From Rebecca billardiae RCC1528 (taxonomy: Eukaryota > Protista > Haptophyta): 64,000 nt of DNA. Numbering within the stretch: the stretch's first letter is position 1; each line of letters begins with the position of its first letter. Of this stretch, positions 425 to 6,811 are shown piece after piece. Under the pieces are notes generated by a model. It worked only from the letters and a program-made list of their open reading frames with translations. It ran no database searches and had not been told where the DNA came from. The stretch lies in assembly GCA_965240325.2 (NCBI GenBank), contig OZ251231.1, forward strand, positions 2,542,001 through 2,606,000, given 5' to 3'. The position numbers and the translations under genes are program-made.

Positions 425-503
425 ATATATATATATATATATATATATAGTATATATATATACTATATATATTATCGATCATATATATATATATATATAT
501 CAT
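425..503. repeat. (TA)n-rich microsatellite tract
   Basis: Interrupted ATATAT runs seen directly, in an otherwise GC-rich window. Confidence 0.9.
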
Positions 504-1546
504 ATCGTCGCAGCTATACTAGCAGCAGTCACATCGAATTCGATCTCAGAGTATAGACAATACGCCTACGGAATATTAATTGACCACCGCCTCGCGTCAT
601 GACGACGATCGATATGATTATCACAGTAAAGAAATCGATTTTCGGCGTTAAACCCGTCCGCACTTCCGCCCAGTGGGGATGCGCTGGAATTTTTTTCATG
701 CCCCGTTCGCGGCACTTCGCGCCGCGCACAGTGGAGAAAGATCGGGCCGGAAGCCGTTTGAGCATGGTCGGTCGTGCGCACGCCCATTCGAATCGATGGC
801 GCGCTCCGAGCGGCGGGCGTGCGCGCATGACTGCCGCGAGGGGGGCTGCGAGGCGTCGGCCGGCTTGCCAAGGCGGTTCCCTGGGGCGGCGTCACCCTCC
901 CCCGCCCCTCCTCGCCCACCCTCGCTCCACGGGCGGCCACACGTGACCTGTTGAGATGAGTTCACGGGGGCCGCGCGGCACGCGCGCGGAGAGGCGAGGA
1001 AGTGGTGTTTCGCGGAAAAGCGCAACGTCGCATTGTGATCAACCCATGTGGGCACCCGCTCCACACGTTTGTACGCATTCAAACCGCACACAGCGGCCTG
1101 AGCAGCTCCCAGACTGAGTTTCGCTCTTGAAGCCTGTTTTGGGGCCAGATCTTGGTGTGGATGTAGCGCGGCGAGGAGGCGCCGGGCGCGCGCCCGAGCT
1201 GCGTGCTGCCACTCGCCATGACCCATAGACATCGTCCGTCGCGAACGACCCGGCTCGCCTCGACCTCTCCGACCCGCCGGGCAGCCACGACCGAGCGCGC
1301 AGCCAACGGTGTCCAAACAGAGGCTTCTGCCTTCTCAGACCGCGTGGGATGGGCATAGGCGCGAGAGAGGGCGCCCAGCGCGCTCTTGAGATGCACAGGA
1401 GCACGCACTGATGCGTATGGAACCATCCCATCACGATCGCCCCGACCTGGCGCGCCCTATCTGGCCCGTCAGGCTGCCCGCGCCGCCGCCGCCGGGCCGC
1501 GCCGCCGCCACAGGCGCCGCCGCACCGCGGGCACATGGGTAAGTCC

Positions 1547-1842
1547 GTATTCAACAAATACAGAATTTCCGGTGCGGCCCTCTTTTGGGCGGCAAGGTCG
1601 GTCTGGTCGACACCTGCCGCGCGGCATGGGCCACGGCGCGGCGAGGTGGCGGCTGGCGCACCGCGGCGTGGGCGGGATGGCTCGAGGACACCACCGCCCC
1701 GCCTCCCACGCCGCGCCGTGCGCGTGCGCCGTGCTCTCGTCGCGTACCGATTTTCCTGCGACGAGCGACGTCCAACAGCGCGACCATGCCATCGCGCGAC
1801 GAGGTGCGTTCAGCTCGGCGATTTGTCGTATTTGTTGAATAC
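1547..1842. repeat. 296-bp segment bounded by a perfect 15-bp inverted repeat (MITE-like)
   Basis: GTATTCAACAAATAC (1547-1561) and GTATTTGTTGAATAC (1828-1842). No clear TSD. Confidence 0.5.
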
Positions 1843-2389
1843 ATGCGGGTACGAATCGGCCGCAAGATGGCCTCGACGTACACGTCGAGAGCCACGCGCG
1901 CGGTGTGGAGTGGCACGCGACGCGGAGAGGGCGGGTGCGGTGCCGCGGGCGCGCGACTGGTCTAGAACATCCCAATGAAGCGCGGGACGGCGCTGCGCGC
2001 CTGTGCTCGCCGCCGTCTCCTCGCAGTCGAAAATATCTGTGCACCCTTCTGGGTGCGCCCCCCGAGTTTTGCCAGAATCAGGGGTGTCCAGGAAGCCCCC
2101 CCCACCACGCTCTAGGGGCACCTAGAGCGGGGGCACCTTAGATTCCTGGCTGAGCGGTCTTTTACCCATCTGTAGGGACACTTCCGGAAGGTACCTGGCG
2201 CGGTGGTTGTGACCTATGCGCAATGATGCGTGCCGACTCGTAAATATTCCATACGCAACGACAGCGATCCGTCCAGTACGACGAGAGTGGATCTGATACC
2301 GCCAGGAGACAGGAGTAGACAGGCGCCGCGTGTTGCGGCGCAGCCGCCGCGCGCGGTCGTGCGGCGGCCAGCGGCGCGGCCGGGAGGAG

Positions 2390-4470
2390 CCCCCGCCCCG
2401 TATCAGTGATACAGGCAGATACAGTGATACAGTGATACACGGGTGGCCTGTAGTCCGGGTGCCGGCAGTCCGGGAGCGGACGGCGGCGCGCGCGGTGGCA
2501 GCTTGGCAAGGAGCCCCCCCCGTATCAGTGATACAGGCAGATACAGTGATACAGTGATACACGGGCCTGGCCTGTAGTCCGGGTGGCGGCAGTCCGGGAG
2601 CGGACGGCGGCGCGCGCGGTGGCAGCTGCTTGGCAAGGAGGGCCCCCCGTATCAGTGATACAGGCAGATACAGTCGTGATACAGTGATACACGGGCCTGG
2701 CCTGTAGTCCGGGTGGCGGCAGTCCGGGAGCGGACGGCGGCGCGCGCGGCGCGGCAGCTGGCAAGGAGGCCCCCCGTATCAGTGATACAGGCAGATACAG
2801 TGATACAGTGATACACGGGCCTGGCCTGTAGTCCGGATGGCGGCAATCCGGAAGCGGACGGCGGCGCGCGCGGCGCGGCAGCTGGCAAGGAGGCCCCCCG
2901 TATCAGTGATACAGGCAGATACAGTGATACAGTGATACACGGGCCTGGCCTGTAGTCCGGATGGCGGCAGTCCGGGAGCGGACGGCGGCGGGCGCGGCGG
3001 CGGCTTGGCAAGGAGGGCCCCCCGTATCAGTGATACAGGCAGATACAGTGATACAGTGATACAGGAGGCCTGCTGTAGTCCGGATGGCGGCAGTCCGGGA
3101 GCGGACGGCGGCGCGCGCGGCGGCGGCTTGGCAAGGAGGCCCCCTGTATCAGTGATACAGGCAGATACAGTGAATAGTGATACAGTGATACACGGGCCTG
3201 GCCTGTAGTCCGGGTGGCGGCAGTCCGGGAGCGGACGGCGGCGCGCGCGGCGCGGCAGCTGGCAAGGAGGCCCCCCGTATCAGTGATACAGGCAGATACA
3301 GTGATACAGTGATACAGGAGGCCTGCTGTACGGTCCGGGTGGCGACAGTCCGGGAGTGGACGGCGGCGGGCGCGGCGCGGCAGCTGGCAAGGAGGCCCCC
3401 CGTATCAGTGATACAGGCAGATACAGTGATACAGTGATACAGGAGGCCTGCTGTAGTCCGGATGGCGGCAGTCCGGGAGCGGACGGCGGCGCGCGCGGCG
3501 CGGCAGCTGGCAAGGAGGCCCCCCGTATCAGTGATACAGGCAGATACAGTGATACAGTGATACAGGAGGCCTGCTGTAGTCCGGGTGGCGGCAATCCGGG
3601 AGCGGACGGCGGCGCGCGCGGTGGCGGCTTGGCAAGGAGGCCCCCCGTATCAGTGATACAGGCAGATACAGTGATACCGAGTGATACACGGGCCTGGCCT
3701 GTAGTCCGGATGGCGGCAGTCCGGGAGCGGACAGGCGGCGCGCGCGGAGGCGGCTTGGCAAGGAGGCCCCCCGTATCAGTGATACAGGCAGATACAGTGA
3801 TACAGTGATACAGGAGGCCTGCTGTAGTCCGGATGGCTGCAGTCCGGGAGCGGACGGCGGCGGGCGCGGCGGCGGCTTGGCAAGGAGGCCCCCCGTATCA
3901 GTGATACAGGCAGATACAGTGATACAGTGATACACGGGCCTGGCCTGTAGTCCGGATGGCGGCAGTCCGGGAGCGGACGGCGGCGCGCGCGGCGGCGGCT
4001 TGGCAAGGAGGCCCCCCGTATCAGTGATACAGGCAGATACAGTGATACAGTGATACACGGGCCTGGCCTGTAGTCCGGGTGGCGACAGTCCGGGAGCGGA
4101 CGGCGGCGCGCGCGGCGCGGCAGCTGGCAAGGAGGCCCCCCGTATCAGTGATACAGGCAGATACAGTGATACAGTGATACAGGAGGCCTGCTGTCATACG
4201 GTCCGGGTGGCGACAGTCCGGGAGTGGACGGCGGCGGGCGCGGCGCGGCAGCTGGCAAGGAGGCCCCCCGTGTCAATGATACAGGCAGATACAGTGATAC
4301 AGTGAGTACACTGGGTGGCCTGTACTCTGTAGTCCGGGTGGCGGCAGTCCGGGAGCGGACGGCGGCGCGCGCGGCGGCGGCTTGGCAAGGAGGGCCCCCC
4401 GTATCAGTGATACAGGCAGATACAGTGATACAGTGATACAGCAGGTGGCCTGGTAGTCCGGGTGGTGGCA
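2390..4470 (+). repeat. ~125-bp tandem satellite, 17 units, forward orientation
   Basis: Core GTATCAGTGATACAGGCAGATACAGTGATACAGTGATACA starts at 2400, 2522, 2649, 2776, 2900, 3024, 3146, 3277, 3402, 3525, 3647, 3773, 3895, 4018, 4142, 4270 (variant) and 4401. Cores are separated by near-identical GC-rich linkers. Confidence 0.97.
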
Positions 4471-4984
4471 GTCTGGAGTCTGGGCGTGTGCCGGCGAGTG
4501 CCGGCGGCAGCAGTCCGGGCGCGGACAGGGACGATTGCGGCGGCCTGAGCAGGGAGTTCCCGGCCCCGACGGTGGTGAAGTTGGCTCGCCTGCGTGCGGC
4601 GGATGATCAGTCAACGGTGAGCAAGACGGGGGGGGGCGGGGCGGGGGGCGACACGGCACGAGGCCCTGACGGCCGAGCTGGCTGGCGAGCCGTTGTGCGC
4701 CGCAGCATACGCAGCGCCGCACGCGCGCTGCCGGCGAGGGCACAGGCGGTGATCAGGCATGGCGGCGGCCAGCAGGCACGGTGCCGGCTCTCGCCTGCGC
4801 GCTCGGCCCGCAGGGCGCGTGCCAGTCAGTCATTGGCGCGGCAGCCGGCGGCGGCTGCCGCGCCGTCAGCGGCCGCCGCGGGCGTGCGTGGCGACAACTG
4901 CAGCGATGCCTGGCTGTCGCGGTGCGGCTCGCAGAACAGCGCACGGGCGCCACGTCTCCATCACGCCACGGCTCCAGCGCGCCC

Positions 4985-5400
4985 TGACTATCACTGTATC
5001 TGCCTGTATCACTGATACGGGGGGGCTCCTCCCCGCCGCGCCGCCGCGCCTCACCACCGTCCACCCGGACTGCCGCCACCCGGACTACAGGCCACCTGTA
5101 TCACTGTATCACTGTATCTGCCTGTATCACTGATACGGGGGGCCTCCTTGCCAGCTCAAGCTGCGCCGCCGCGCCGCGCCGCCCGGTCCACCCGGACTGC
5201 CGCCACCCGGACTACAGGCCACCTGTATCACTGTATCCGACTGTATCTGCCTGTATCACTGATACGGGGGGGCTCCTCCCGGCCGCGCCGCCGCGCCGCG
5301 CCGCCGTCCACCCGGACTGCCGCCACCCGGACTACAGGCCACCTGTATCACTGTATCACTGTATCTGCCTGTATCACTGATACGGGGGGGCCTCCCCGCT
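4985..5400 (-). repeat. Same satellite, ~4 units, inverted orientation
   Basis: Reverse-complement core GTATCTGCCTGTATCACTGATAC at about 4996, 5114, 5244 and 5361. Confidence 0.95.
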
Positions 5401-5584
5401 CCCGCAGTCCCGGCCACCGCGCCCGGGCGCCGCACTCGTTCGCCCGCCGGCCCCGGAACGGACTTCCGTCGCCCGGACTCTGAAGTCCGATGCCAAGCCC
5501 GGGGGCGGGTGGCGGCGGCAGTCCGGCGCGGCGGGCGGGCGGCGCGCCCTGGGCGACGCGCGGCGCGGCCGTCGTCAGCCGGCC

Positions 5585-5820
5585 GAGGAGCCCCCCTGTA
5601 TCAGTGATACAGGCAGATACACTGATTACAGTGATACAGTGATACAGGTGGCCTGTAGTCCGGGTGGCGGCAGTCCGGGTGGACCGGGCGGCGCGGCGCG
5701 GCGGCGCAGCTGGCAAGGAGGCCCCCCGTATCAGTGATACAGGCAGATACAGACATTAATTACAGTGATACAGTGATACAGGTGGCCTGAGTAGTCCGGA
5801 GTTATAGGGAGTAGTCCGGG
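5585..5820 (+). repeat. Same satellite, 2 diverged units, forward orientation
   Basis: Cores at about 5598 and 5728, with small insertions (e.g. ACATTAATT). Confidence 0.9.
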
Positions 5821-6811
5821 CGGCGGGCGGCGCGCTGACGTACGGACACGGTGCCGCGGCGGCTGGGGCTGTGCAGCCTGTCGGCTCAGGGCCCTGTATC
5901 AGCCGGCATCGATACACAGCTGGGCTGTATCAGGTGGCATTGATACACAGCCGGGCTGTATCAGCGGGTGTTGGTGCCCACTGATACAGCCCAAGATGAG
6001 TATTGCGTAAGGGGGATCAGACGTGTGCCGCCGGCCAACCAGCGCTCGCGGACGGCTGCGCTTCTCGGAAACTACAGATTCTGGCAAAACTCGGGGGGCA
6101 CGCCCCCTTCTGTCTGGCTAGTCGACCGGCCGGCACGCGGCACGCGAGCAGTGTGTGTGGGGAGGAGTGTGACATGGCAGGCTGTGGCGAGGTGGATGGC
6201 CGTGCAGGTCTACGCTAGGAAGGGCCGCTCCCGCGCTCGCGCGGTGCCTCGCGCACGCCTCGTCGAGGACGAGCGTGTTTGAATGGCTCCGGAGAAGGCT
6301 TACGATCGCTCGTTGATGGGCAGCGCGCGACACGTGCACACGACGAAGGTGACGACCAGGCACTCCGGCGAGGGCGGCTGTGCTGGTAGCAGACTGCATT
6401 CGGAGTAAGATGCGCCATCTTACGCGCCGCTTCGCCTCGCTGCATCGCCGCACTGAGCAGCAGGGCTCCACGCTCACGAATGGCTCACCACGAGCTACGT
6501 GACCGGCCAGCCGCGTGCAACCCGGCGAGGCAGAGAGGGGCGGAGGGATGGGGAGGCTGGGTGGGATGTTGCAGTCCCATGCCCGGGGCACTCGCCAGGC
6601 GCCTGCGCGACCACCGTAGCGCCGTCTGTGCGCTCGTGCGGCCCGCGCGAGAAATTCCCCGAAAATCGGCTCGTGTCGGACGGCGGGTGTCGTTAGAATG
6701 GGTAACGATAATCCCGTTTTTCGTGTTCACTGTGATAGTTATTGACGATATGATGTGCGCATGATGAATGCTGATGCTATATACTTCCAAGGTGTCGACG
6801 ATCGATCGTCA

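Follow-up and report, generated by a model that had tools for sequence, protein, structure and literature searches.

A 64,000-nucleotide stretch of contig OZ251231.1 of the haptophyte alga Rebecca billardiae RCC1528 (assembly GCA_965240325.2, positions 2,542,001 to 2,606,000; hereafter the window, which lies on contig 14, C14) contains a satellite that twice changes orientation and whose units are built around copies of the hexamer GATACA. The locus raises the question of what kind of DNA carries such an array and whether a protein reads its core. We find that the array makes up the interior of a mobile element of 4,053 bp (window 2052-6104). This element belongs to a small and young family of non-autonomous cut-and-paste DNA transposons and is inserted into a copy of another transposon. 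The conserved core of the satellite is probably an amplified cluster of sites for the transposase that would mobilise this family, as judged from the arrangement and evolution of the sites.

The array and the transposon that contains it

The first-pass annotation of the window, made from the letters alone, described a 125-bp satellite of 17 forward, about four inverted and two forward units. Counting a 24-nt core, GTATCAGTGATACAGGCAGATACA, on both strands confirms this arrangement; it occurs 23 times in the window, where shuffled sequences lead one to expect none, with 17 copies on the forward strand (2400-4424), 4 on the reverse strand (4995-5383) and a further 2 on the forward strand (5598-5751). 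The satellite itself stands, whilst its period is corrected to 123 bp by Tandem Repeats Finder (16.6 copies and 91% matches over 2396-4473); a 42-mer is free of mismatches in 15 units of the window array. The palindrome GTATCA-G-TGATAC and the 10/8/8 spacing of the GATACA copies, both already remarked upon, can be read directly in the sequence (offsets 8, 18, 26 and 34 within the core), and the 40-bp core as a whole comprises five GATACA(G) sites, arranged as one inverted pair and three direct repeats. The linkers were said to come in a few interchangeable variants, and sorting them across copies agrees with this; variants a, b and d make up the left array, and variant c the inverted and right direct arrays.

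The motif was also noted outside the units, and it does recur there, at 5894-5992, where six further GATACA/TGTATC hexamers form three palindromic pairs. The 4-kb element holds 96 of the 101 such hexamers in the window (23.7 per kb, compared with 0.08 per kb elsewhere in the window). The two orientation switches fall within the 4474-4980 spacer and the 5396-5582 segment, and the fold-back potential attributed to them is real: a pair of 79-nt arms, from the inverted and the right direct arrays, is 100% complementary, and the DNA fold of 4985-5800 has an energy of -384.8 kcal/mol (z = -38.6). The GC content of the window, taken per 2 kb, is 57-84%, and an Rfam search of the window gave no match.

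The element starts with GGTGCGCCCCCCGAGTTTTGCCAGAATC and ends with the reverse complement of GGCGTGCCCCCCGAGTTTTGCCAGAATC. Its terminal inverted repeats (TIRs) are 28 bp long, with two mismatches between 2052-2079 and 6077-6104; identity between the ends stops after about 45 bp, and the unique subterminal parts beyond this point are not inverted copies of one another. The 8-bp sequence CCCTTCTG is found twice in the window, 4,053 bp apart, and once in an intact paralogue of the surrounding repeat (L039, C16:962375-964417), in which the empty site reads ...GTGCA CCCTTCTG TCTGGCT.... Since this paralogue has a single CCCTTCTG, the sequence is an exact 8-bp target-site duplication (TSD). The two flanks of the element, window 622-2051 and 6105-6734, likewise adjoin in dozens of other copies of the host repeat, of which the L039 copy is an example.

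Searches of the whole genome (72 Mb in 41 contigs) for a 21-mer of the TIR return 16 occurrences, every one of them at an end of this family, which comprises roughly six large copies together with two short derivatives and some fragments, all scattered (Table 1). The mapping of copies across the genome, which the first-pass annotation had proposed as a check, gives few dispersed loci, each within a transposon copy and with different flanks. The ends of the C1, C16 and C18 copies are identical to those of the window element, and perfect 8-bp TSDs are also present at the C1 (TGTCGCGC) and C18 (TGACGTCT) copies; that of the 454-bp C5 copy is degenerate. In their unique parts the four complete copies show substitution differences of 0.3-1.9%, and the window copy is the most diverged. 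TIRs, a TSD of fixed 8-bp length at three copies, dispersed copies and the lack of intact coding capacity together characterise a non-autonomous class II element. The first-pass annotation had noticed neither the TIRs nor the TSD, nor that the stretch as a whole is mobile.

The large copies have a common layout: left end, long forward array, spacer, inverted array, segment, forward array, right palindromes and right end. The spacer (about 550 bp across copies) is 96-98% identical at six loci, the segment of about 200 bp following the inverted array is missing from the C1 copy, and the right subterminal palindromes are present in every copy that retains a right end. The arrays are more labile, with 17-31 forward, 1-6 inverted and 2-4 forward units between copies, and both the unit numbers and the order of the linker variants differ freely among them. 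The 454-bp C5 derivative has no array and keeps both ends.

Core conservation and a sister lineage

That the core is conserved above the linker, as the first-pass annotation supposed, is borne out by column alignment. In an alignment of 122 units cut from five copies (40 core and 83 linker columns), minority bases account for 0.25% in the core against 8.3% in the linker; for core columns 25-40, on which the choice of units did not depend, the figure is 0.15%. Substitutions thus occur in the linker at roughly 30 times their frequency in the core. The linker contains 13 CpG and the core none; decay of CpG as the cause of linker variability can be rejected, as the non-CpG sites of the linker are more variable (9.5%) than its CpG sites (5.7%). 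Small insertions are found in 16 of the 122 cores (13%). Linker diversity lies far above the divergence between copies and, therefore, the unit variants are older than the copies; the core is unchanged across these variants, and is still kept in older relatives on contigs 10 and 8, the units of which are approximately 77% identical.

A sister element on C17 (809 bp, L043:1359-2167) has the TIRs of the family, with one mismatch in each, and a left end that is 92% identical over its first 168 bp to that of the window element. It contains one satellite-type unit and the right subterminal palindromes. In the core of this unit GATGCA replaces GATACA in the inverted pair and in the three direct repeats, and the right palindromes, at homologous positions, read CTGCATCAG...CTGATGCAG. 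A diverged relic on C16 (C16:1728560-1729700; L040:2560-3700) likewise has GATGCA at all homologous sites (counts in Table 1). This coordinated one-base switch in two sequence contexts points to a sequence-specific binding protein, which would most likely be the transposase of the family; chance, or gene conversion of 7-bp motifs, is an unlikely source of it. Across the genome, GATGCA patterns were found at the C17 element, at the C16 relic and at a small fragment on C3, and otherwise only as scattered single matches. The C16 relic and the C3 fragment (C3:3581021-3581123) are old relics of the GATGCA lineage that have no ends; they carry unit-like cores on both strands, placed around a spacer 76-77% identical to window 4758-4950.

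Searches for partners, and the surroundings of the element

The reading frames of the spacer give no indication of a gene. The open reading frames (ORFs) are rich in Arg, Ala and Pro, as expected of GC-rich non-coding DNA, the main frames have no match in Pfam, PHROG or the PDB, and in other copies stops or shifts interrupt the frames; when the longest spacer ORF was searched against the genome in six frames, only the family's own copies were found, with stops. Genome searches with the subterminal DNA of the left and right ends and with the pattern of palindromic site pairs recovered the family only. Searches with a 21-mer (up to 2 mismatches) and an 18-mer (up to 3 mismatches) of the TIR recovered only the family, matches at chance level and an unrelated satellite of about 90 bp. 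The latter contains CCCAGAATTTTGGCAGAA, which is 3 positions off the inner TIR 18-mer; this likeness may be due to chance or to a distant link with the ends of the family. The 24-mer core has no match in metagenome and viral contig collections, and 30 metagenome matches to the TIR 18-mer were set aside as single chance matches with no extended identity.

A six-frame Pfam search of the genome found a single hAT dimerisation domain (PF05699; C17:765118-765351, with a TAG inside) and a single P-type RNase H N-domain (PF21787; C21:1533970-1534365, in an open frame of 1,322 amino acids), although the genome is rich in DNA transposons. A solo right end at C1:3273149 was considered as a partner site and rejected; rather than a transposase, it adjoins a SURF4-like host gene and an ORF of 1,518 amino acids without Pfam domains (L044:5131-9687; C1:3276130-3280686). 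Two right-type ends lying 37 kb apart on contig 1 were also considered as a single element; they have no matching TSD and are separate fragments.

Two of the copies bear marks of later events. In the C18 copy a 1.95-kb transposon of another family (C18:1923735-1925686; L038/L041), with TIR TAGGTGGGTCCCT... and a 7-bp TSD, CCTGTCG, is nested just to the left of the right subterminal palindromes. In the copy at the end of contig 8 (L034:5560-7175; C8:3531059-3532674), the sequence ...TGTATCACTGTATCACTGTA abuts, at L034:5755, approximately 1.4 kb of (TTAGGG)n, which continues up to the contig end. A chromosome appears to have broken here within a satellite core and to have been healed by the addition of a new telomere.

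The 2.07-kb host repeat is abundant, with at least 40 copies scored at 92-99% identity and 300-690 candidates, and the dinucleotide flanking it is duplicated (AT in the window, TA in L039). From its CACAG termini and 2-bp duplication it is probably a non-autonomous relative of RAG1-like transposons. An (AT)n microsatellite lies about 115 bp to the left of its end (window 425-505); short inverted repeats of 75-80 bp around this position recur beside other copies of the host repeat.

Table 1. Coordinates of the element and its host repeat in the window, copies of the family elsewhere, motif counts and loci of the 90-bp satellite. C, contig; TIR, terminal inverted repeat; TSD, target-site duplication.
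Feature	Position	Strand	Remarks
Host repeat, left part (outside element)	622..2043	+	2.07-kb non-coding transposon, CACAGT...ACTGTG ends
Left TSD copy, CCCTTCTG	2044..2051	.	Single copy in empty-site paralogue L039
Left 28-bp TIR, GGTGCGCCCCCCGAGTTTTGCCAGAATC	2052..2079	+	Reverse complement of 6077-6104, 2 mismatches
Left unique subterminal region, without GATACA cluster	2080..2395	+	97% identical to C1, C16 and C18 copies
Left array, 17 forward 123-bp units, variants a, b, d	2396..4473	+	Other copies: 28-31 units
Central non-coding spacer	4474..4980	.	96-98% identical in six copies; no protein-family match
Inverted array, 4 units, variant c, leftmost truncated	4981..5390	-	Other copies: 1-6 units
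GC-rich segment between inverted and right direct arrays	5391..5582	.	82-85% identical in C16, C18 and C8
Right direct array, 2 units, variant c	5583..5800	+	Long hairpin with inverted array
Right subterminal site cluster, three pairs CTGTATCAG...GATACA(C)AG	5894..5992	.	85-210 bp from end
Right 28-bp TIR	6077..6104	-	Pairs with 2052-2079
Right TSD copy, CCCTTCTG	6105..6112	.	Single copy in empty-site paralogue L039
Host repeat, right part (outside element)	6113..6734	+	Same interrupted repeat
Complete copy	C1:1980088-1986022		5.9 kb
Complete copy	C14 (window)		4.05 kb
Complete copy	C16:335605-341388		5.8 kb
Complete copy	C18:1918071-1925914		7.8 kb including nested 1.95-kb transposon
Telomere-truncated copy	Contig 8 end		Runs into contig end
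Internal fragment without ends	Contig 8		One forward unit, spacer, one inverted unit
Short deletion derivatives	C5; C17		454 bp (C5); 809 bp (C17)
GATACA/GATGCA count	C14 copy		96/0
GATACA/GATGCA count	C1 copy		154/0
GATACA/GATGCA count	C17 element		0/9
GATACA/GATGCA count	C16 relic		0/10
Satellite of about 90 bp	C3:1794734-1796016		
Satellite of about 90 bp	C7:1799052-1799876		
Satellite of about 90 bp	C14:1892908-1900323		
Satellite of about 90 bp	C37:816948-817230		

Readings of the array and its known counterparts

The explanation that we consider probable overall is that of a satellite-filled, foldback-like transposon in which the core represents an amplified cluster of transposase sites. 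The GATACAG heptamers would be subterminal binding sites of the family's transposase, in an arrangement like that of the subterminal repeats of hAT and CACTA elements and of the THAP sites of Galileo. Tandem amplification of a 123-bp segment with five such sites, through unequal exchange or slippage during replication, would have built the array, and a subsequent inverted partial duplication would have produced the fold-back, with unit numbers drifting in each copy since; many sites would confer a high avidity for transposase supplied in trans. Of the two kinds of protein-binding array that the first-pass annotation had suggested, transposase subterminal sites are favoured by the TIR- and TSD-bounded element, the right palindromes and the GATGCA switch, from which binding is deduced, whilst centromere- or origin-like DNA is disfavoured, the arrays being few, uneven and located in transposon copies.

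Several observations weigh against the transposase-site reading. No transposase or other coding partner was found in the assembly: the PF05699 locus on C17 has neither the motif nearby nor similar ends, the PF21787 locus on C21 has neither a similar TIR nor a motif cluster, and the motif and similar ends were also not found at the copy of a hAT-like chromo/Tudor family on contig 14. No hexamer cluster lies within the first 344 bp at the left end of the element, no matching TSD flanks the C16 copy, and, to judge from the 454-bp derivative, the array may not be needed for movement. Moreover, with 17-31 redundant sites the selection acting on any one of them should be weak, which leaves the near-invariance of the core without a full explanation.

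Part of this evidence would suit an ordinary internal minisatellite in a dead transposon, one that lengthens and shortens through slippage and unequal exchange and the core of which is kept by mutation or gene-conversion bias and read by no protein. Such neutral cargo is compatible with the free variation in unit number and linker-variant order, with the retention of both ends by the array-less derivative, with insertions in 13% of the cores and with the lack of a partner protein in the assembly. We nevertheless think it unlikely, since core and linker share one genealogy per unit and should show equal neutral diversity, whereas they differ about 30-fold in a manner not due to CpG; since an AT-rich core has stayed unchanged in a genome of approximately 70% GC; and since all 9-10 sites of the sister lineage have undergone the A-to-G switch, in two unrelated contexts, for which conversion of 7-bp motifs is an improbable source. 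A source of hairpin RNA, which the first-pass annotation had also raised, is compatible with the transposase-site reading; read-through of the inverted arrays would give double-stranded RNA and small-RNA silencing of the family, with the array kept or tolerated. The perfectly complementary 79-nt arms, the z of -38.6 for 4985-5800 and the presence of the inverted block in all large copies speak for this, but it calls for complementarity of the arms rather than for an invariant core with variable linkers, it leaves the heptamer switch unexplained, and the arms are very unequal (17-31 against 1-6 units), so that we allow it only a slim chance.

A conserved box in a variable unit also resembles the pattern of the CENP-B box in alpha satellite, and a chromosomal satellite of the host, centromere- or origin-like and bound by a host protein, would give such a pattern. 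DNA of this kind would be expected at one major locus of host DNA per chromosome. Instead, the arrays all sit within elements that are bounded by TIRs and have fresh TSDs, the loci number three on contig 8 and two on each of contigs 1 and 16, with none on most of the 41 contigs, and the arrays span only 2-4 kb; a host satellite is accordingly very improbable. Arrays of repeats are easily misassembled, and one of the copies sits at the end of a contig, which might cast doubt on the orientation switches. The inversions are nonetheless not artefacts of assembly, a possibility that we consider negligible, because the same forward/spacer/inverted/segment/forward layout and the spacer recur at five independent loci whose flanks differ.

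For the superfamily of the element, the 8-bp TSD fits a hAT or a P type. hAT elements make 8-bp TSDs; their consensus is YARNG for the termini and nTnnnnAn for the TSD, and neither the ends of the alga element (GGTGC.../GGCGT...) nor its three TSDs (CCCTTCTG, TGTCGCGC and TGACGTCT) fit. The 8-bp TSD and the 28-bp TIR agree with the P superfamily, which has TSDs of 7-8 bp and TIRs of about 30 bp or longer; the TSD of Galileo, itself a P element, is 7 bp. A hAT partner would be expected to encode a transposase with a BED finger, an RNase H fold and a hAT dimerisation domain, and a P-type partner a THAP-type transposase between ends like those of the family. Short subterminal motifs read by the transposase are known from hAT (the AAACGG hexamers of Ac/Ds) and from CACTA (the 12-mers of En/Spm). 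As in the alga element, these motifs are short, occur in both orientations and lie within a few hundred bp of the ends; they are, however, scattered, whereas the alga motifs are packed into a 123-bp unit amplified up to 31 times.

A closer counterpart in overall design is Tetris of Drosophila virilis, a non-autonomous foldback element whose inverted arms contain repeats of about 220 bp and whose TSDs are 8-9 bp long; only three complete copies of it exist, and it has a deletion-derived relative, DAIBAM, a miniature inverted-repeat transposable element (PMC4079207). Both elements lack a conserved ORF and vary in repeat number between copies, both have few complete copies beside many rearranged ones, and the 454-bp and 809-bp derivatives parallel DAIBAM. 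Foldback elements are built of long inverted arms, made up of tandem repeats, on either side of a variable middle domain. The alga element has inverted arrays and a strong hairpin; unlike in Tetris, its arms are very unequal and accompanied by a third direct block, its TIR identity ends after about 45 bp, and beyond its copies no kb-scale free satellite of its units was found; it is hosted by an alga rather than by an insect, and the two share no sequence similarity. In Galileo, of the P superfamily, THAP sites were located by footprinting (Marzo et al.) both at approximately 70 bp from the end and within the tandem repeats of its long TIRs, and multiple sites are proposed to give binding specificity (PMC3688188). 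A short recognition sequence near the end that is repeated in the tandem repeats of the arm, putative in the alga element, is common to both; Galileo has a known P-type transposase with footprinted binding, whilst the sites of the alga element are candidates.

Tetris, Galileo and FB of Drosophila thus already exhibit the design, and the result overturns no current ideas; an apparent mystery satellite becomes an ordinary but well-resolved transposon that makes its own satellite, in an alga whose mobile elements have barely been described. More tentatively, the heptamer clusters may be a recognition code that co-evolves with the transposase or another DNA-binding protein, one in which two sister lineages that share their cleavage ends differ by a switch at a single base (GATACAG vs GATGCAG); their amplification might then reflect an avidity arms race among non-autonomous elements, with fragile sites as a side effect of the arrays. 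The telomere-capped copy is a hint that chromosomes can break at such inverted arrays, and the GATACA and GATGCA lineages form a ready-made pair of matched probes with which the binding protein might be sought.

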